A DNA stretch of 64,000 nucleotides, from the sequence record OR836606.1, one strand, 5' to 3'. The stretch's first letter is position 1, and every line of letters starts with the position of its first letter. Both the position numbers and the translations under genes were made by a program. Shown in pieces: positions 28,976 through 46,645 of the stretch. The notes under the pieces are model-generated. The model did no database searches. It was not told the origin of the DNA and saw nothing but the letters and a program-made list of their open reading frames with translations.

Positions 28976-31339
28976 TTATATACTACAGCTTTCACATTCA
29001 ACAATACCTTGAGAACTTTCATCATGATCAGGTGAATAAATACGAGTATAATACATAGATTTAATACCTTTACTATAAGCATAGTTACGTAATCTACTAA
29101 TATCACGAGTAGTAGTTTCTTTATCTAAAGAATCTTTTTTCCATTCATAAAGTTCTGGATCAAGTTCATTCATTAAGTAAATATTCATAGAAATACCTTG
29201 ATCTACGTGATATTGAGCTTCTGAATATAAATCAATCATATCTCTCATATCTAATTGGTAAGCATTTTTCTTAAAGTATTCAAAGTTGTCTGGTGTAATA
29301 CCTGGCGCTGGATAGAAAGTAGTGCCTGTTTTACCTTCTACACGTTCTTCAATTAACTCAACAATAGGATGAATTGAAGGCGATACTTCTCTAACATAGC
29401 CAATAGACCCATTAGGAGCTACAGCTAATCTATTCTGATTGTATAAACCATCCATAACAATATTATTTCTTAATTGTTCCCAATCGCTATCAGATGGAAT
29501 AAAAATGTCTTTAAATAATTCTTTAACTTTTTCAGTACGTGGTTGAATATTTTTACCAATATAACGTTTATCAAAATAAGAACCATCAGCATATTCAGTT
29601 TTCTCAAATAAATAGAATGATTCATTTTTCTCTTTAGCAATTTTATTTGATTCAACTAATGTCCAATAATTTAATAACATGAAATAAATATTAGTGAAAT
29701 CTTTAGATTCTTCAGAACCATATTGAATGTGGTTTTCAGCTAAGAAAGTGTGTAATCCCATAGCACCTAAACCAACTGTATGAAATAAATCATTTCCTTT
29801 TTTAATTGTAGGTACAGCTTCGATATTAGATTTTTCAGATACTGAATTTAAACTTCTTAACATAGTTCCTACTGATTTACCAAAATCTTCCGATTTCATT
29901 AAACCGGATACAATAGTTGAAGCTAAGTTACATGAAATATCTGTTCCTGTTTTAACATATTGTTGATTATCATCAACTAATGAAGGATATTGTACCTGCA
30001 AAATTTCTGAACACAAATTACTCATTTTAATTTTACCATGACTGATTGGATTAGCTCTATTAGCTGTATCAATATTAATGATATAAGGATATCCAGATTC
30101 TTGTTGTAATTTACTAATTGTGGTTTCTAAATCACGAGCATACATTTTATCTTTACTAATACGTTTATCATCTACAAAGATATCATAATAAGTATTAAAG
30201 TCAATACTGTCGAAATCCAAATCGTAATATTTTTTAATGTCATATGGGCTAAATGTATATAATGATTTATTTTCTTTAACTAACTGATAATATTTGTCTG
30301 GAACGGTTAAACCTAATGAAATAGTTTTTAATCTCACTTTCTCATCAGCATTTTCTTTCTTAGTATCTAAGAATTTCACTACATCTTTATGGAAAATATT
30401 TAAATAGAGCGCACCTGCACCATTACGTTGCATTTATATTAACTATATGAATTTCATATAGATTAGACTATATCTTATACTTCTAATAAGTATTATTATA
30501 TTTAATCGTTGGACAATCATAAAGATTGATGCTGATTAAGTTTATAAACTTTTCCAGCAATTAATAATATTTATACTGAGCCATTAAAATTAACCCAGTT
30601 GATTTACATATGATAATGTATCTTCAAATACTTTCATAACCGGAACTACTCCTGAAGCGGCACCTTCTACACCTTTAATTGGATCATTATCTGCACGTAG
30701 ATTTGATAAACTGATTCCACAGCCTCCGCCTCTTTTACTTAATTGAGCTACGTTAGTAACAGTTCTATAAATTGAAGCTAGAGAATCTTCCATTGTAACT
30801 AAGAAACAACTTATTAACTCACCAGAACGTTTTCTACCTGAATTGAGAAATGTCGGTGTAGCGGGTTGGAAAGTTCCTGTAATGATTTCTTTAGCGATAT
30901 TCTTAGCTAATTCTTCATCTCCATCAGCTAAATATAAAGCTACAAATAAAATTCTATCTTCATATAGTTCTAATAAAATCTCCCCAGCATCATCTTTCAT
31001 TGCATACTGTTCATAGAATTTTTTAGCCCCCAATAAGCGAGTAAATCTATGCTTATAAGCCATTAATTCTTTCATTAATCCTTTAATGAACTCAAAATCA
31101 TAATTATTGATCATATCGCCATCAATATAATCATTATCAACTAGATAATTAATTTTTTCTTTATATGTTTTAAAGTATCTTACATTCTTATTAACTGAAT
31201 CTAAGAAATATTTTTTAACTGAAGCTAATTCAAATTCTAAATCTAAATTACCGTCTTTTAATTGTGACCCTCTTGAGTTTAATTCGTTATATGAATAATC
31301 TTTAAATTTTTCTGAAGTTAAATCAATTTCTTTTGGCAT
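28976..31339 (-). CDS. nrdE: Class Ib RNR alpha subunit, spliced: join(30593-31339, 28976-30430), 733 aa
   Basis: FQPATPTFLN, SCF, SNLCSEI, CNL, VAPNGS, KSMYYTR, C-terminal CESC; splicing gives YVNQLG|QRNGAG. Confidence 0.92.
30431..30592 (-). ncRNA. Minimal group I intron (162 nt) in nrdE
   Basis: Exon ends in U, intron ends in G; P1 ACUGGGU/GCUCAGU with U.G at the splice site; core AAUUGCUGGAAA, AAUCAGCA, CAACGAUUAAA, AAGAUAUAGUC; removal restores the frame. Confidence 0.9.
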
Positions 31340-34682: not shown

Positions 34683-34756
34683 TTTTTATATACTATTTTA
34701 CTAAAATATCTAATACAATCTAGTTAGATTTGTTTTATAAAAATTTGCGATAATAA

Positions 34757-34789
34757 ATAGGTAATGACAAATAATATGTCATTACCTAT
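34757..34789 (-). terminator. Terminator after the terminase gene
   Basis: ATAGGTAATGACA / TGTCATTACCTAT 13-bp stem. Confidence 0.7.
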
Positions 34790-34796
34790 AATATAT

Positions 34797-37700
34797 TTAA
34801 TCTAATAGATTCATTATTCTTTTTGATTTCTGATCTGGAGAAGAATTGTTATTCTGTAATAAAGGATTACTAGGGAGATTACCATCAATAATTCCACTAA
34901 TACGTTTCATGGATGCAATATCTTTTCTTCTAGCTTGTCTTTCTTTTTCAATTTCTTCTGCATTATCTCCATCTGCAGATACCATTGAACCGTATTTAAC
35001 TTTAACAAATTTCTTAATGTCTTTCTCATAGTAATAAGCATATAAACAAAATAGATAACTCATAAGTAAATCGTCATGTCCGCCATCAGGGTGATCAATT
35101 CTACCTTTTTTCATTTGAAGGGATTTTATTTGTTGGAATAATGGTTTATTATTAACTAAATAAGGTTTTTCTTCAACAATCATTGATAAAATTTCATTGA
35201 GCATTAGATCTGCTATATAAATTCATGAGTTTAATTTAATTAAAATGAATTTATTCGACTTCGTCATCACTCTGACTTACTTTGCACTTTAAGTTTTTTC
35301 GTTATAAACTACTTCAACAGAAAGCTTTAATCAAAGCAGAGGTTAAAGCTCTTAAGTCATCGCATTTGGACATTTAGAGGAATAAGACCTCATTTAGCCT
35401 GCCCAACAAAACGCTTACCATACAGTTTTAAATTGACAGCAGCGTTATAATCTCTATCCATTTTATGTCCACAATCACAGGAATACCATCTATCTGATAG
35501 TTTCAACTTATCTTCTTTAGTTAGAATTTGGCCACAATTAGAACATAATTGAGTTGATGGAAACCATCTGTCAGCTACAATAATAGTATTACCATTGCTT
35601 TCAGCTTTTTGTTCAAGTAAAGTCCTAAACTGTCTCCAATTGGACTGTGCGATTGATTTGGATAGTTTTCTATTTTTAATCATATTTGAAACCTGTAAAT
35701 CTTCAATAGTTATATATTGATAATTGTTAATCAAGTTAGTAGTAATCTTATGAAGATAATCTTTTTTAATATTATTAATTCTATACCATACTTTTTGTAT
35801 TTTGGTTTTCAATACATTGTATTTATTAGAACCATAAACTTTTTTAGATAATCTTTTTTGGTAGTATTTGATTTTATTATAGAGTGAGATTAGTTTATTA
35901 TTTAATGAATGGTATTTTTTAAATTTACCGAAATCATCATTAATAATAGCTAAATCTTTTACACCTAAATCAATACCTACATGACTATTGTTATGAATTA
36001 ATTTTTTACTGTTATCAACTTTCATTACTATCGAAGCGAAATACCTACCAGCATATTTGGATATAGTTACTTCTTGTATAGAATTATAATCTTTGTTTAA
36101 AGGTTCTTTCATTTTAATTAATGAATTTACACCACGCAATTTAAGTTTATTATTTTTCTCACCTTTAATTTGAATAGCGTAAGGATCTTTCCTATAGAAC
36201 CTTGCTCTTAATTTAGATTTCTTTTTAGATTTAAATTTAGGATATTTACCATATCCTTTCCACATCATATTAAATGCTTTACCTAGATCTTCTGTAGAAG
36301 TTTCAATTATCATGATAATTTGATCTTTCTCCCAATCTTCTTTACATTTTTTAAGTTCATCACGAACTCTACGATGAGTTGGTTTTGGTAAAGATTTATC
36401 AATTTGATAATTATTCCACATATATTTCCATTTATTAAGTGCCTTGTTATAAATATAACGACTATATCCAAAAGCTTGATTAAATATCTCTCGTTGTTCT
36501 TTATTAGGTTTCAATTCGATTTTTATAGATTTGTACATGTGATTTTCACCTCGATTCATATTTCTAAATGATTTAGAATTTATAATTCATTGTTTAATAT
36601 ATCGAGGTAAAAATTATTTTAATTAAATTAAACTCACGAATTCCAGAAATCCCTTTCAGGTTCTGTTAAATAGCAAGACTATATCATGATCCATTAAATC
36701 AATGGACCCCTCGCACTTCGAAAAACTTCTGATGAAGTTAATCTACTCTACTCACTTCACATAGTATTTCAACTATGCTTATTCAGGTTAATCAAACCTG
36801 TGCTTTCGATAGTCGTTGAACGTTTATCCATCATGTGGACACTTCGCTGCTAGACTTCCCATTGTTTACAAACTTTAGCGATCTAGGGTTTTCACCTAGA
36901 CTTGTTTTCAGCATAGTTCATCTTAGAGATTTTTTCTGTCTTTCGACTGCATGTCACGCTATCCATTACTGGCATACGTTGTAGCTCTCTAAGCTTTAGG
37001 GTTTTACAAGCAATTCACGAGGTATTTTTACCACTAATTTCATGAATTAAAATTAGTTTAATTTACTTATATAGTAGCAGAGCGTGAAACATGAATTAAT
37101 AAGAATTTAAGTCTTAATTCACTTAAAATATCTTAAATTAAAACTGTTTCGTTACTCTAGATTTTTTAGTTGTATCAATACCATATCTTCTTACTTGTTT
37201 GGTAACTTTATTAGTGCTATTTCTAGGAATTTCATTAAATACTTGCTTATTAACTTCAACTTGTTTTTCTGCTACTCTATTCTTTAATGAGTAGAAAATA
37301 TTGTCTCCAATACCATCAGTTTGAATCATATCTTCTATCATTACAGTACCTGCATAGTTACGTTCAGGTATTAATACTGCATTAGGTATATAAAGCGTAA
37401 TAAGTTCTTTAATTAATTTTCTAAAAGTAGGTCCATTAATTACATTATTTTGGAAAATCATTACAGGCTCTAATGTACCTGGATCAACTACAGTAAATGC
37501 AGTATTATCTCGACCAAGACCACCAGATATATCAATACCAACAAGCCAGTTCTTTTCATGCATATTATCCATCTTTTTAACCATATAAACATAATAAGTT
37601 TTACCATTTATTTTAAAATCAATAGTATTATATATCTCTTTATTTGCATATAATGATAATTCTGACATTTGTTGTTCATCAAATAAAGAATCATCGTTAC

Positions 37701-39379
37701 TAAACGCCCATTCAAGAAGTATCTCACGTTTAACTGCTTCTAAAGAACCAATTTGACGTTTTTGCTTTTCTAACCAAGCATCATCTTTACCTAATTCTTT
37801 ATATGAATATTCTATATAGATGAATGAATTGCCTGAATTACTTTCCATATACTCTTCTAATTTTTCATTACCCTCTTCTTCAGAATTAATGTAATAATCA
37901 TATATTTTTTCTGTCCATTGTGCTGCATCATTCATTTGCTCAAAGAAGAACTGTCCTTGAGGTACATCCAAAGTACTCATATTTTTTATCCTATATTAAT
38001 TTAATATAGATAAGACTATATCTTAGTATATTATAATACCATTTATTATTTAGTCGTTAAACAAGTATTATCAACTTGATGCTGATTGTCTTAATAAAGA
38101 TTTTCCAGCAATTAAATAAATAAGCCCAGTTTAATTTTAGGCGTTGTTGTAATTAGAAGACCATAAGGTGTGCCATTTTTCTTAGCTATTGCAGATGCTG
38201 TAGAAACTGCCTTTTAATATTAATCTACATGGATTCCATATAGAATAGACTATATCTTAGTATTATATTAATACTATTTATTATTTAGTCGTTGAACACT
38301 ATAAATAGCGATGCTGATCGTCTTAATAAAGATTTTCCAGCAATTAAATAAATAAGCCCGCATTAATTTCAGGCCTCATTGCTTCAAACATTGTTTGGTT
38401 GTGTGGAATGAATGCCCACTCATCCAACCAGACCATAGGTCATTATGTTAACTATATTTAAAAAATATAGATCAGACTATATCATACTCATATAAATAAG
38501 TGAATATATTTAGTCGTTGAACACTATAATTAGTGATGCTGATTAAGATAATAATCTATTCCAGCAATTAATATTCTTTTACTACTGCAACTATCTACAG
38601 TAGAACCACGCTATTTTAGACTATATCTTCAATTTTATAATTGTCTTTTATTTAGTCGTTGAACACATATGTGATGCTGATCAAATTAAATAATTTGTCC
38701 CAGCAATTAAAAAGATTTATAGCAAGCCATGATATTAACCTGCTTTATTTGCACTCTCACTGTTAGTCGGAGGTGAAACTGTTTTAATAGTATTGTTATT
38801 ACTAGCTAATTGAAATTCGTTGATCTTATCTCTATCATTTTTATCTCCAAAATTAGCTAATACATATTCAGGTAAACATTTCTCTTTAAATAAGTTTTTA
38901 AGACGTTTTAAGTTCTCAGTTGTATCTGAATAAGATTTGTGTGTAAATAACATTGTATAGTTACTACCTACTAATAACATTATCCATGAATAATAACATA
39001 CTGCTGAATATGTTTTATAGTGCTGACGTGGAAGCATTATAGCTGTATCTAAATTGTGTAACATACAAAATGTCATCGCCATATTACCTCTATGAAGTTC
39101 ATACATAACCTTACCGCCAGGAACAGGAACTCTTATAACTTCCCTTAAATAAAACCATATATTAATTTTAGCTTCCCTTAATACACGGGTTTTCATTTCA
39201 TCAGAAAGTTCAGGATCCCAAGGATCTACTCCTACAAGATTTTTATCATATAGAGTTAATGGAATCCCATAATTTCTGACGTTGTTCTTCTTAAGATCCC
39301 TAGCCACTCTTAAAAAACTAACATTATTAGTTTTATAATCGTAATAAACTTTTTTCTTTAATTTTGGTTTAATTGTCAT
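34797..39379 (-). CDS. terL: Terminase large subunit in six exons: 38738-39379, 38597-38610, 38371-38440, 38139-38210, 37155-37977, 34797-35209 (677 aa)
   Basis: Walker A LPRQHYKT; splicing gives KAG|RGSTV|PMVWLDEWAF...MRP|AVS...ITTTP|STL...KKSR|DLML; nuclease motifs GIDISGG, ERN, HDDLLM; exon total 2034 nt is divisible by 3. Confidence 0.88.
35210..35400 (-). ncRNA. Putative TnpB omega-RNA scaffold (guide would extend into terminase exon 6)
   Basis: Structured non-coding right end after the tnpB stop (AAGAGCTTTAA/TTAAAGCTTT, TGACTT/AAGTCA); position follows known TnpB biology; 5' boundary approximate. Confidence 0.6.
35390..36538 (-). CDS. tnpB: TnpB RNA-guided nuclease (IS200/IS605/IS607 family), 382 aa
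   Basis: HTH N-terminus IKIELKPNKEQ; RuvC GIDLG, IEDL, DRDYNAA all intact; CSNCG/CDCG zinc finger; GAGGTG SD favours ATG at 36538. Confidence 0.92.
   Translation of the reverse strand: MYKSIKIELKPNKEQREIFNQAFGYSRYIYNKALNKWKYMWNNYQIDKSLPKPTHRRVRDELKKCKEDWEKDQIIMIIETSTEDLGKAFNMMWKGYGKYPKFKSKKKSKLRARFYRKDPYAIQIKGEKNNKLKLRGVNSLIKMKEPLNKDYNSIQEVTISKYAGRYFASIVMKVDNSKKLIHNNSHVGIDLGVKDLAIINDDFGKFKKYHSLNNKLISLYNKIKYYQKRLSKKVYGSNKYNVLKTKIQKVWYRINNIKKDYLHKITTNLINNYQYITIEDLQVSNMIKNRKLSKSIAQSNWRQFRTLLEQKAESNGNTIIVADRWFPSTQLCSNCGQILTKEDKLKLSDRWYSCDCGHKMDRDYNAAVNLKLYGKRFVGQAK
36548..36608 (-). promoter_or_regulatory. Hairpin sequestering the tnpB SD, with an internal late promoter (36583-36594)
   Basis: ACCTCGAT pairs with ATCGAGGT, which contains the SD; AACA ATGAAT TA lies between the arms. 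Confidence 0.65.
37978..38138 (-). ncRNA. Minimal group I intron (161 nt), terminase intron 4
   Basis: After ...ACGCCU, ends AUG; P1 GCCU/GGGC; AAUUGCUGGAAA, AAUCAGCAUCA, UUUAACGACUAAA, AAGAUAUAGUC. Confidence 0.88.
38211..38370 (-). ncRNA. Minimal group I intron (160 nt), terminase intron 3
   Basis: After AGGCCU, ends AAG; P1 AGGCCU/GGGCUU; full core motifs. Confidence 0.9.
38441..38596 (-). ncRNA. Minimal group I intron (156 nt), terminase intron 2
   Basis: P1 CUACUGU/GCAGUAG with terminal U.G; ends AUG; full core motifs. Confidence 0.9.
38611..38737 (-). ncRNA. Minimal group I intron (127 nt), terminase intron 1
   Basis: P1 AGCAGGU/GCUUGCU; P4 UGCUG/CAGCA; P5 CAAAUU/AAUUUG; P7 GACUA/UAGUC; P8 CAAUU/AAUUG; ends UAG only 8 nt after P7. 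Confidence 0.88.
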
Positions 39380-39398
39380 ATTTATTTCAACTCACTTT

Positions 39399-40562
39399 CT
39401 ATACATTTAATCTATCTGATTTTTTAATTAATGTTTGAATATCAGAAAGTTGTTGTTTTAATTCATTTTTAACTTCTTTATCATTATTAGGGTTACTTAT
39501 TTCAAATTTTAATGTTTTAATAATAGCTTCAATTGAATCCGTTGGATAGTCTCTATAGTCTCTAATAAACAATCTACTTGGATATAATAATTTCCTAACA
39601 ATTTTACCTAATAAAGTTTTACCTTTTTTATTTTCAGATTTAGTTCTAAATGATTTGTATATGATATCATAAAAATTTATAATTTCAGTAGAATAACCGT
39701 ATAACGTAGGTAACTGATTAGCCGATCTTTCTGAAAGGTTGTAGTTCATTTTACCCACTCTTTCATTATCTAAAAGATTTAAAGTTACATTAGCTATAAA
39801 AGAACTGCCTAACACCAGTGGTAATACTCCTGTCAATGAAGTTAATCCAGCAACTAAAACTGTCATAGCTATAATCATAGGACCTGCGAATTTTAAATTT
39901 CTAGTTGTATCAGATTCAATGTCCTTAGTATACTGAAATTGAACTGGCTTGTTATCTTTATATTTTAATTCAAAAGCGGGTTCTTTTCCTTGGCTTAATA
40001 CTTTAATTTCGATAGGTAAAAATAGATTATGTCCCATTTCATGCAATAATAATGCAGTACACATTCTTTCATTAAAATTACTAAAAGTCACTTCTTTAGA
40101 AGATTTTTTCTTTTCTAAAAAGTATCTTATTGAAGATAACTCAATAAATACCTCAATTTCCCTAGGTTTAGCGTAATGTATACCATTTTTCTCTTCCATA
40201 ACTATTTTTGTTATGCCATCAATAGTATCTCTTATTTGTTCTGGCTTAATTAAAGTATAAGCCACTGATCTTACTCTAAATTTATCTTTACCTTTAGGAT
40301 CAGCTTCAACAAATTTTAATTGCATATTAGCATTAAATAATTTTTTAGTAATTTTAGAAATATTATTAGCTATTTTATTTATTTCATGTTTATCAATTAA
40401 ATCAAATTCAGATTTATCGAAATTATAGCTATCTAATAAAGTTTTAAATTCTTCATCTATTTCTCTAAGTAATGAAGTATTTTTACTGAAATTAAAAGCA
40501 TCTTCATTAATATTCATTATTTTATTAATTTTATTCAATTGGCATTCTTTTCGTAAATCCAT
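39399..40562 (-). CDS. HExxH zinc-metallopeptidase-like protein with hydrophobic segments
   Basis: LLLHEMGH, downstream SERSA, hydrophobic stretch; paralogue of 40590-41696. Confidence 0.6.
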   Translation of the reverse strand: MDLRKECQLNKINKIMNINEDAFNFSKNTSLLREIDEEFKTLLDSYNFDKSEFDLIDKHEINKIANNISKITKKLFNANMQLKFVEADPKGKDKFRVRSVAYTLIKPEQIRDTIDGITKIVMEEKNGIHYAKPREIEVFIELSSIRYFLEKKKSSKEVTFSNFNERMCTALLLHEMGHNLFLPIEIKVLSQGKEPAFELKYKDNKPVQFQYTKDIESDTTRNLKFAGPMIIAMTVLVAGLTSLTGVLPLVLGSSFIANVTLNLLDNERVGKMNYNLSERSANQLPTLYGYSTEIINFYDIIYKSFRTKSENKKGKTLLGKIVRKLLYPSRLFIRDYRDYPTDSIEAIIKTLKFEISNPNNDKEVKNELKQQLSDIQTLIKKSDRLNV

Positions 40563-45283: not shown

Positions 45284-46645
45284 ATGTCTAAAGATATAAA
45301 AGCTTATCTTATTAATGAATCTAACACAACTTCTCAACCAGAAGTAGTTCAAGATAATAATAAATCGGTTAGATTCATTGCTGAGTTACAAGAAGCTGAT
45401 AGACAAAACCGTAATGGTCGTGTTTATCGTAAAGATGTTATTCAAAGTGGTTTAGATAGTCCAGTAATACAAGAAAAATTAGCAAGAAAAACTTTTTATG
45501 GTGAGTTTTAGGTTAAATGGCTCACATTAAATTATATTAATTGCTGGAAAAGATTATTATCTTAATCAGCATCAACTTAATACAAGTTGTTCAACGACTA
45601 AATATATAGCCTAGATGATATAGTCTAACCTTTATTAAAATGATAAAGAATAATAATTTGCAGGACATCCTTTAAGTGATGAACCTAAACGACAAATGTA
45701 TATTGATCAACGTAATATTTCTCATATCGTTACTAGAACATGGTGGAATGGTAATAAATTAATGGCAGAAGTAGAAACGGCACAAACAGCAGCTGGTAAA
45801 GATATGAAAGGTTTAATCGGACAAAAGTCTGACGTATCTTTCTCAATGCGTGGTTTCAGTAAAATTAATAGAACACCTTCTGGCGAAGTTGAAGTTACTA
45901 AACCTTTAAGATTAATCTGTTAAATTGTAGCAGCTTTATATAGAAATATATATTGAAAAAGAATATTAATTGCTAAGAAGTTTAATTAAGCCAATTAGCA
46001 TCAACTTAATACAAGTTGTTCAACGACTAAATATATTTACTCTTAATAAGAGTATGATATAGTCTAATCTTAATAGTAAGATCTATTAAGTTAATATAAT
46101 GTACGATAAAATAAACCTTGTCGCTTCTTAAAGCAATTTAAGAATGATAAAACTATTAATTGCTAAAATCTTTTATTAAAGTAATTAGCATCAACTTAAT
46201 AAAAGTTGTTCAAAGACTAAATATAGTTTATCCTTTTATAGGATAATGATATAGTCTGATCTATATTATACTAATATAGATAACATAAATGTGGGTAGTA
46301 ATTCCATCTCATCAAGATTCTTACATTCAAAATATTATTTCAGAAGGACACAATAATTATAATCCTAATGATTTACAAATGGTAAATGAATCAATTGATA
46401 TGTTCACTAATGGTAAAATTACTGAATTTTCTCCTAGAGAAGTTTTAACTTATATTAAAGAAAATTCAGATAATGTAAAATACATTGCTGAAGATATGGG
46501 GTTTGCTGGAGTTGATGAATCTAATATCAGTTATGATAAAGGATCTCAATTAGCTTCAATTAGAGAAAGTAATAAAACTATTAAAGTTTTCTTAGAAGAA
46601 TCTGTTCTTAATGGACTTGATGATTTCTATAGAAACTTTAAATAA
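45284..46645 (+). CDS. Prohead core protease (T4 gp21-like) in four exons: 45284-45506, 45661-45920, 46102-46107, 46292-46645 (280 aa)
   Basis: NRNGRVY; splicing gives GE-S-GHP; ISHIV; SFSMRG; IC|YD|WVVIPSH; exon total 843 nt is divisible by 3. Confidence 0.9.
45507..45660 (+). ncRNA. Minimal group I intron (154 nt), protease intron 1
   Basis: P1 GUGAGU/GCUCAC; AAUUGCUGGAAA, AAUCAGCAUCA, GUUCAACGACUAAA, GAUAUAGUC; ends UUG. Confidence 0.9.
45921..46101 (+). ncRNA. Minimal group I intron (181 nt), protease intron 2
   Basis: P1 CUGU/GCAG; compensatory P4 UGCUAA/UUAGCA; R and S elements; ends AUG. Confidence 0.88.
46108..46291 (+). ncRNA. Minimal group I intron (184 nt), protease intron 3
   Basis: P1 CGAU/GUCG; P4 UGCUAA/UUAGCA; GUUCAAAGACUAAA; GAUAUAGUC; ends AUG. 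Confidence 0.88.

Follow-up and report, generated by a model that had tools for sequence, protein, structure and literature searches.

In MarsHill, Madawaska and Machias, three Staphylococcus jumbo phages, the large terminase (TerL) gene is disrupted by introns, and, of all the genes so affected, it alone has a mature peptide that "could not be confidently reconstructed" (Korn et al.). In phiNIT1, two group I introns of the ribonucleotide reductase gene enclose a small exon, and SIOphi shows exon skipping (NAR 2025, PMC11878797). Here, the TerL gene is described in a 64,000-nt stretch of DNA (the window, taken at its full length) that matches Staphylococcus jumbo phage LY01 (OR836606.1, 258,897 bp) with 100% identity. 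The gene lies on the minus strand and contains five intervening sequences, four of which are mini group I introns and one of which is a larger insert. Between the first two introns, which are compact and of the same family, 14 nt very probably form a real internal exon of this gene. The relatives of LY01 are S6, PALS_2, MarsHill, Madawaska, Machias, AH12, SA1, PB50 and UFV_DC4.

The MarsHill gene is similar to that of LY01. It is the same gene, interrupted by the same intron family, and it shares introns 1–3 and an identical 14-nt exon. Intron 4 and the TnpB insert are additional in LY01, and the description by Korn et al. contains neither the micro-exon nor the exact junctions. Because of the 14-nt exon, TerL reconstruction and protein alignment failed earlier. 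The six-exon structure fills this stated gap for the TerL of MarsHill-like Staphylococcus jumbo phages, and the intact S6, SA1 and UFV_DC4 genes are now alignable with it.

The terminase micro-exon

The coordinates of the exons and intervening sequences are given in Table 1. When the six exons are joined, they form a single 2034-nt open reading frame (ORF) of 677 amino acids (aa), the same length as the S6 TerL coding sequence (CDS). The joined LY01 protein is identical to S6 TerL at 657 of 677 residues, with zero gaps. An uninterrupted 2034-nt TerL gene is present in S6, SA1 and UFV_DC4. In S6 it reads ...SANKAG RGSTV PMVWLDEWAFIPHNQTMFEAMRP AVSTASAIAKKNGTPYGLLITTTP STLDVPQ... without interruption. 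Exon 1 has 92.7% nucleotide identity to S6 TerL nt 1–641 (tblastn match, aa 1–214), and exon 5 has 94.6% nucleotide identity to S6. A Walker B-like LDE sits in exon 3, and HDDLLMS lies in exon 6, within the nuclease C-terminus.

Table 1. Features assigned in the window, with the basis of each assignment
Feature	Position	Strand	Length (nt)	Content	Basis
TerL exon 1	38738..39379	-	642	aa 1-214, ends ..ANKAG, final base T	ORF list
TerL intron 1	38611..38737	-	127	P1, P3-P8, P10	P/Q/R/S core, helices, Rfam
TerL micro-exon	38597..38610	-	14	CGTGGTTCTACTGT	Letters, S6 BLAST, pairing
TerL intron 2	38441..38596	-	156	P1, P3-P9	Core, helices, covariance model, Rfam
TerL exon 3	38371..38440	-	70	V219 third base, then PMVWLDEWAFIPHNQTMFEAMRP	S6 BLAST, joined ORF
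TerL intron 3	38211..38370	-	160	Group I	Core, helices, covariance model, Rfam
TerL exon 4	38139..38210	-	72	AVSTASAIAKKNGTPYGLLITTTP	S6 BLAST, joined ORF
TerL intron 4	37978..38138	-	161	Group I	Core, helices, covariance model
TerL exon 5	37155..37977	-	823	aa 267-540 + first base of D541	S6 match
Fifth intervening sequence	35210..37154	-	1945	TnpB ORF 35390..36559	Absent from S6 + six other relatives
TerL exon 6	34797..35209	-	413 (incl. stop)	aa 541-677	ORF list, S6 match
Ribonucleotide reductase large-subunit-like gene mini-intron	30431-30592	-	162		Context ..SYVNQLG / QRNGAGALY...
Prohead core scaffold/protease gene, first mini-intron	45507-45660	+			Intronless PALS_2 gene
Prohead core scaffold/protease gene, second mini-intron	45921-46101	+			Intronless PALS_2 gene
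Protease gene 6-nt exon	46102..46107	+	6	TACGAT (Tyr-Asp)	PALS_2 gene reads LICYDWVV, ..KPLRLICYDWVVIPSH..
Prohead core scaffold/protease gene, third mini-intron	46108-46291	+			Intronless PALS_2 gene

The micro-exon reads ACAGTAGAACCACG on the plus strand and CGTGGTTCTACTGT on the gene strand, where it is preceded by ..GATATAGTCTAAAATAG and followed by AGATAGTTGCAGTAGTAAAAG. It codes for R215, G, S, T and two bases of V219, and the A at 38440 completes the valine codon. A tryptic peptide of the joined TerL would start with GSTVPMVWLDEW. In a BLAST comparison of the S6 gene with the window, exactly 16 S6 bases separate the exon 1 and exon 3 matches (1+14+1). In S6, SA1 and PALS_2, which are without introns here, exactly 14 nt code for RGST(V), and KAG-RGSTV-PMVWLDEW reads through. 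Of the 14 nt of the micro-exon, 5 differ in S6, 4 in Madawaska and 6 in Machias, and RGST is kept in all three. Replacements among the relatives are, for example, AGA for CGT and AGT or AGC for TCT, and the AH12 counterpart codes for RGGT. Because divergence among the relatives mostly keeps RGST, the 14 nt appear to be translated in this frame.

A first-pass annotation, made from the letters of the window, had described an internal exon at these coordinates, with these letters and this pairing, between two group I introns. The intronless homologues and the ribozyme cores support that description; the exon exists because two compact introns sit 14 nt apart. The coding assignment R-G-S-T-(V) is likewise borne out, as the frame is read directly and matched by S6. 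The same annotation had expected a frame shift upon skipping, and omission of the 14 nt from the joined gene does lead to a stop, at codon 221 (computed). From the intronless homologues, the synonymous-only divergence and the viability of the phage, we infer that the micro-exon is included in the mRNA.

In a phmmer search of S6 TerL against the Protein Data Bank (PDB), the sole match is T4 gp17 (3EZK). The best-scoring stretch of this alignment spans aa 209–269, with TerL ..KAGRGSTVPMVWLDEWAFIP.. aligned there. The micro-exon residues are equivalent to gp17 R245–F249, just ahead of the Walker B residues D255 and E256. The RG aligns with gp17 R245-G246, ten residues before Walker B Asp255 and Glu256. 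The motif had been named RG-x-T in the first-pass annotation. Its RG is the conserved terminase RG, but the longer name is only that reader's label, and T4 has RGNS. All four mini-introns lie within the 61-residue stretch aligned with gp17, after codons 214, 242 and 266 and inside codon 219. This placement agrees with what appears to be a general habit of mobile introns, insertion at the best-conserved sequences of essential genes. The pair that flanks the micro-exon appears to sit where the ATPase domain is most conserved. Pfam matches no terminase family in either the TerL fragments or the intact S6 TerL, so the identity of TerL rests on depositor annotation in the relatives and on the T4 gp17 match.

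The TerL gene appears in the ORF list as pieces of 214 aa (39379..38735), 30 aa (with MVWLDEWAF), 280 aa (37980..37138) and 135 aa (35204..34797), together with the TnpB gene (36559..35390). In GenBank, the LY01 pieces are entered as hypothetical proteins, and MarsHill has two 'terminase large subunit' CDS. It could be supposed that the gene is not spliced at all. It would then make separate polypeptides (aa 1–214, aa 267–540 and perhaps more), or it would be a decaying pseudogene, with packaging by another terminase. This agrees with the GenBank entries, which list only fragment ORFs for LY01 and MarsHill, and with the start ATG that is created for the exon 5 ORF at the intron 4/exon 5 boundary. 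However, the fragments would miss aa 215–266, which contain the RG motif, the Walker B-like LDE and the TTTP motif and lie in the sole segment aligned with T4 gp17. Synonymous change keeps the protein sequence of the small exons conserved, and the joined frame is exact. The intervening sequences also show covarying ribozyme folds and exact splice-site signatures. An unspliced gene is therefore extremely improbable. An unspliced TerL transcript reaches a stop at codon 215 (computed). As these phages are isolates that form plaques and cannot do without TerL, splicing would be needed.

Flanking introns and guide pairings

Intervening sequences 1–4 appear to be unusually compact group I introns. 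All four are without P2, and their GC content is 20–25%. Four blocks, AATTGCTGG, ATCAGCATC, GTTCAACGACTAAAT and (A/T)GATATAGTCT, occur in this order in four of the four introns. We take AATTGCTGG, ATCAGCATC, GTTCAACGACTAAAT and GATATAGTCT to be the group I P, Q, R and S consensus, which was then tested. In the window, 8 R elements are found where 0.2 would be expected. In an RNAalifold prediction from 14 copies, made with no guidance, P5 and P6 are recovered, as are P4 (formed by P and Q) and P7 (formed by R and S). A covariance model built from 18 copies finds 21 copies in the window and the relatives. Intron 1 begins with the TAA that closes the exon 1 ORF and ends with ..AAAATAG; it has neither P2 nor P9 and contains 7 nt after P7. 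Intron 2 ends with ..ATAATG and scores 126.7 bits with the covariance model (R1).

The pairing of the core is consistent between a local and an independent alignment. In the local alignment (A3, 20 copies), 96.6% of cells are paired and 16 of 31 pairs are compensatory. In the independent alignment (A4, 45 distinct IMG/VR copies), these values are 96.0% and 20 of 31. None of 500 shuffles reaches as high a pairing in either alignment, and slid controls reach 28–47%; both alignments are fitted to the covariance model, which favours its pairing, and the slid controls carry the same bias. In A4, P5, P6, P8 and P9 vary at every pair, and P4 and P7 are near invariant. A MAFFT alignment (A1) does not resolve the loops of P3, P8 and P9 well enough for column counts, and a test of cognate against non-cognate strands and the model-fitted alignment were used instead.

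P1 and P3 lie outside the covariance model and were tested by pairing cognate and non-cognate strands between introns. The P1 score is 13.1 for cognate strands and 7.2 for non-cognate strands. The P3 score has a mean of 13.5 for cognate strands and 9.2 for non-cognate strands. For each helix, none of 20,000 permutations reaches the observed sum. The cognate strands of P3, which cross P7, include TCTTTT/AAAAGA, GAATAT/ATATTC, AAACTAT/ATAGTTT and CTCTAT/ATAGAG, among others. Intronless homologues fix the ends of 12 introns. In all 12, the last base of the 5' exon is T and that of the intron is G, and the splice site is where the best P1 ends. The P1 helices of introns 1 and 2 close with U.G.

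Both halves of the micro-exon are paired with intron sequences. Micro-exon nt 8–14 (CTACTGT) pair with GCAGTAG, 8 nt into intron 2, and form a 7-bp P1 with an 8-nt loop and the splice-site U opposite G. This is the helix of which the first-pass annotation had made half of the micro-exon the 5' strand, and the Rfam group I model independently places P1 on the same CTACTGT/GCAGTAG hairpin. Micro-exon nt 1–6 pair with the intron 1 guide as a 6-bp P10 (CGUGGU/AUCAUG), the intron strand of which is directly 5' of the P1 strand. As a result, 13 of the 14 bases are taken up by two non-overlapping guide pairings.

In the proposed mechanism, each intron would fold into a standard group I core (P3–P8, and also P9 in intron 2). 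The intron 1 guide would pair with the end of exon 1 (AGCAGGU/GCUUGCU, P1) and with micro-exon nt 1–6 (P10), and the intron 2 guide would pair with micro-exon nt 8–14 (CUACUGU/GCAGUAG, P1). Because the two guide pairings do not overlap, either intron could go first. Guanosine would attack after the U of each U.G pair, and the freed exon would then attack after the terminal G. Removal of these introns and the other three intervening sequences would give the 2034-nt mRNA and the 677-aa TerL. Splicing in infected cells, and its autocatalysis, order and efficiency, are predicted from the sequence.

A joined TerL form could exist while a sizeable share of the transcripts skips the micro-exon, through attack by exon 1 on the intron 2 3' splice site. 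Just 170 nt separate the two 3' splice sites, and the skipped product, which stops at codon 221, would be a truncated protein of 220 aa that tunes or delays terminase production. Exon skipping is known for Twort orf142. The dominant variant of SIOphi in vitro lacks an internal exon (PMC11878797). However, with the intron 2 guide GCAGUAG, only 2 bp are available to the end of exon 1 (..CAGGU), and the end of the micro-exon likewise pairs over only 2 bp with the intron 1 guide. Because the guides differ in specificity, as read from their sequences, cross-reaction should be poor. The 14 nt are also included in both RNA-library contigs described below, and the arrangement is explicable without a regulatory role. 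Substantial skipping is judged improbable, and inclusion of the micro-exon is preferred.

Occupancy among relatives and RNA evidence

In PALS_2, S6 and SA1, there is no intron at site 1 or site 2 and the gene is uninterrupted there. AH12 has a 206-nt intron with P9 at site 1 and none at site 2, and the counterpart of the micro-exon is continuous with exon 3. LY01 and MarsHill have a mini-intron at each site and a 14-nt exon between them. Madawaska also has a 14-nt exon, with a mini-intron at site 2 and an intron with a 340-aa ORF at site 1. In Machias and PB50, the first intron is 15 nt upstream of site 1 (after GAGAGT) and site 2 has an intron with a 336-aa ORF, which leaves a 29-nt exon. Sites 1 and 2 are thus occupied independently. 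The inserted intron ORFs are labelled homing endonucleases by the depositors, and in the Madawaska ORF a treble-clef zinc-finger domain is the sole Pfam match. Intron 4 is absent from MarsHill, S6 and SA1, and PALS_2 TerL retains an ORF-bearing intron at site 4. Machias and PB50 contain a further intron inside codon 241, 4 nt from the LY01 intron 3 site. In Machias, the 5' U and the terminal G of this intron are irreconcilable, and its boundary is uncertain by one base.

The guide strands covary with the exon letters among the relatives. Intron 1 P1 is AGCAGGT/GCTTGCT in LY01, AGCCGGT/GCCGGCT in Madawaska and AGCGGGT/GCTCGCT in AH12. Intron 1 P10 is CGTGGT/ATCATG in LY01 and AGAGG/CCTTT in Madawaska, immediately 5' of the P1 strand in both. 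Intron 2 P1 is CTACTGT/GCAGTAG in LY01 and GCACCGT/GCAGTGC in Machias, with two compensatory pairs and one C.A mismatch.

PALS_2, which is intronless here, shares the LY01 exon letters GGT CGT GGT TCT ACT GTA CCT (TerL codons 213–221). S6 and SA1 differ from LY01 at synonymous sites, among them the U that precedes each splice site (GGA ... ACC GTT). Candidate explanations are co-conversion together with the introns, an exact loss of introns from PALS_2, and immunity of the target site in genes of the S6 type.

Metagenomic runs, two of RNA and two of DNA, were aligned to positions 34700–39500 of the window. In two contigs from the RNA libraries (X18, 597 nt; X25, 255 nt), 38738 is joined to 38440 with exactly ACAGTAGAACCACG between them. 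In the same contigs, the 160 nt of intron 3 are skipped exactly, intron 4 is absent and exons 1–5 are joined. These exon joints are absent from both DNA metagenomic runs. No sequenced relative has both LY01-type micro-exon letters and a TerL gene free of all four introns, and S6-type letters differ. The contigs are suggestive of the expected spliced mRNA form.

In DNA metagenomes from indoor and soil samples (X1, X4), relatives of the locus are present at 85–99% identity. Some DNA contigs are without the TnpB insert (35206 or 35210 joined to 37159), and one is without intron 3. Because DNA contigs vary in intron 3 and the TnpB insert, intron presence is polymorphic in nature.

Several observations weigh against the reading of the 14 nt as a spliced internal exon. 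The RNA contigs are approximately 95% identical to LY01, have a depth of 3–4 and are metagenomic, and they could stem from an unsampled intronless relative or from DNA in the RNA libraries. None of the public sequencing runs contains LY01 itself (best word share, 0.22), and excised-intron reads were not found in the runs examined. Intron 2 has a weak P10 of 4 bp, with a 2-nt offset. The scores of introns 1–3 with the Rfam group I model RF00028 are all under the 50-bit gathering cut-off, and RF00028 gives zero group I matches on a 3.5-kb slice and on the whole window. In short searches, RF00028 scores intron 1 at 42.1 bits (E 6.4e-10, 171-nt search), intron 2 at 23.7 bits (E 4.9e-4) and intron 3 at 47.8 bits (E 2.9e-11). 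A non-group-I element, first suggested by the empty Rfam searches, is disfavoured by these significant sub-threshold matches in 171–411 nt. Because the alignments in these searches put P1 to P9 where they were placed by hand, with the same P1 hairpins, the shortfall is one of sensitivity and is not a contradiction.

The introns could also be removed non-autocatalytically, with a phage or host protein needed or with intron 1 dependent on intron 2. Some phage group I introns are known to be spliced only in vivo: of the intron-carrying genes examined in phages of the Bastillevirinae, four were spliced in infected cells but not in vitro (PMC11878797). Intron 1, with 7 nt past P7 and neither P2 nor P9, may likewise need protein or favourable conditions, and a GC content of 20–25% implies weak helices. 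On the other side, the core elements and guide pairings are all intact and covarying. AH12 has a site 1 intron without a site 2 neighbour, which argues against dependence of intron 1 on intron 2, although that intron is 206 nt long and has P9. Assisted removal is considered less likely than not.

The intron family and comparison with known systems

The fifth intervening sequence is tentatively IStron-like. Its TnpB ORF contains the Pfam domains OrfB_IS605, Cas12f1-like TNB and HTH, and a 33-nt inverted repeat (35220–35252, 36611–36642) brackets the ORF. A larger, group-I-like core is present, with an R-like GTTCAACGACTATCG near 36822 and GATATAGTCT at 36676–36685. Each end of the insert is placed to within one base. 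A terminal G puts the 5' site after G (AGAG/TAAC), and the alternative has U before the site and a terminal A. IStrons combine a group I intron with an IS200/IS605 element (PMC4227781, bioRxiv 10.1101/2023.11.20.567912). Like them, the insert has a TnpB ORF inside an intervening sequence with group I R and S elements, and its removal is needed for TerL. Unlike them, it has no TnpA and gives no match in an Rfam group I search, its ORF lies within the 33-nt inverted repeat and its host is a phage structural gene.

The same intron family is present in two other genes of the window (Table 1). In the prohead core scaffold/protease gene, the second and third introns are separated by an exon of 6 nt, and the P1 of the third intron is just 4 bp (CGAT/GTCG). 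A single mini-intron interrupts the ribonucleotide reductase large-subunit-like gene. The mini-intron covariance model finds 269 copies in 80 IMG/VR loci (contigs of 200–400 kb), often in dense arrays. One of these loci (L069, 800–4300, minus strand) has five copies within approximately 1 kb, in an RNA polymerase beta'-like gene with an NADFDGD motif. Some apparent exons between introns in the IMG/VR arrays are only tens of nt. S6 TerL has no tblastn match in the 80 loci, and the arrays there interrupt other genes. A scan of IMG/VR for S followed by P at a distance of 30–60 nt (52 loci) was rejected as a count of micro-exons, as only 3 matches in 2 loci fit the mini-intron model.

Twort orf142, as reportedly found by Landthaler & Shub in 1999, has three group I introns of roughly 250–330 nt and shows exon skipping. 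Like LY01 TerL, it is a Staphylococcus phage structural gene with closely spaced multiple group I introns; it differs in phage lineage and in gene. The Bastillevirinae genes (PMC11878797) are also core genes with several group I introns, TerL is among the targets and a small exon was found on close analysis. Their introns have a mean length of 802 +/- 342 nt and many carry endonuclease genes, whereas those of LY01 are 127–184 nt and ORF-less. Splicing in Bastillevirinae is demonstrated by cDNA and in LY01 is predicted from sequence, with exons of 14 nt in TerL and 6 nt in the protease gene. In mitochondrial cox1, micro-exons as small as 1 bp lie between organellar introns, the 1-bp case being placozoan (PMC5436844). 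As in LY01, these introns are crowded into a conserved catalytic region and exons of a few nt are missed by annotation. Unlike LY01, cox1 is organellar and not viral, and its introns are usually large.

Because small exons between introns and exon skipping are already published, the LY01 micro-exon is a well-supported further example of a known phenomenon, with no new mechanism, and the understanding of group I splicing is unchanged. Less ordinary are the very small intron size (127–184 nt) and the abundance of the family. The genome paper of UFV_DC4 states that Rfam found no introns in that phage. Standard pipelines probably under-call this compact family, because RF00028 scores fall just below the cut-off and are lost to speed filters at lengths of at least 3.5 kb. 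Natural cores of 127–160 nt, with an exon that serves as both P10 partner and P1 substrate, would be handy minimal systems for substrate recognition and exon skipping.

The micro-exon may, as a tentative extension, be a sign of a widespread ultra-compact group I clade (about 120–185 nt) in jumbo phages that is packed into catalytic motifs, with exons shrunk to 6–14 nt and taken up nearly entirely by the guide pairings of the ribozymes on either side. If this is true, a single 14-nt exon recognised by two ribozymes could set the order of splicing or gate late TerL via skipping. A literature phrase search for the smallest group I intron gave no match. The Azoarcus pre-tRNA-Ile group I intron, a compact natural ribozyme of approximately 205 nt, is the textbook minimal example. 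The self-splicing of the LY01 introns is only predicted; if they belong to such a clade and splice without help, no well-characterised natural group I ribozyme known to us would be as small. At 127–184 nt, they are shorter than the Azoarcus intron, and intron 1 is without P2 and P9.

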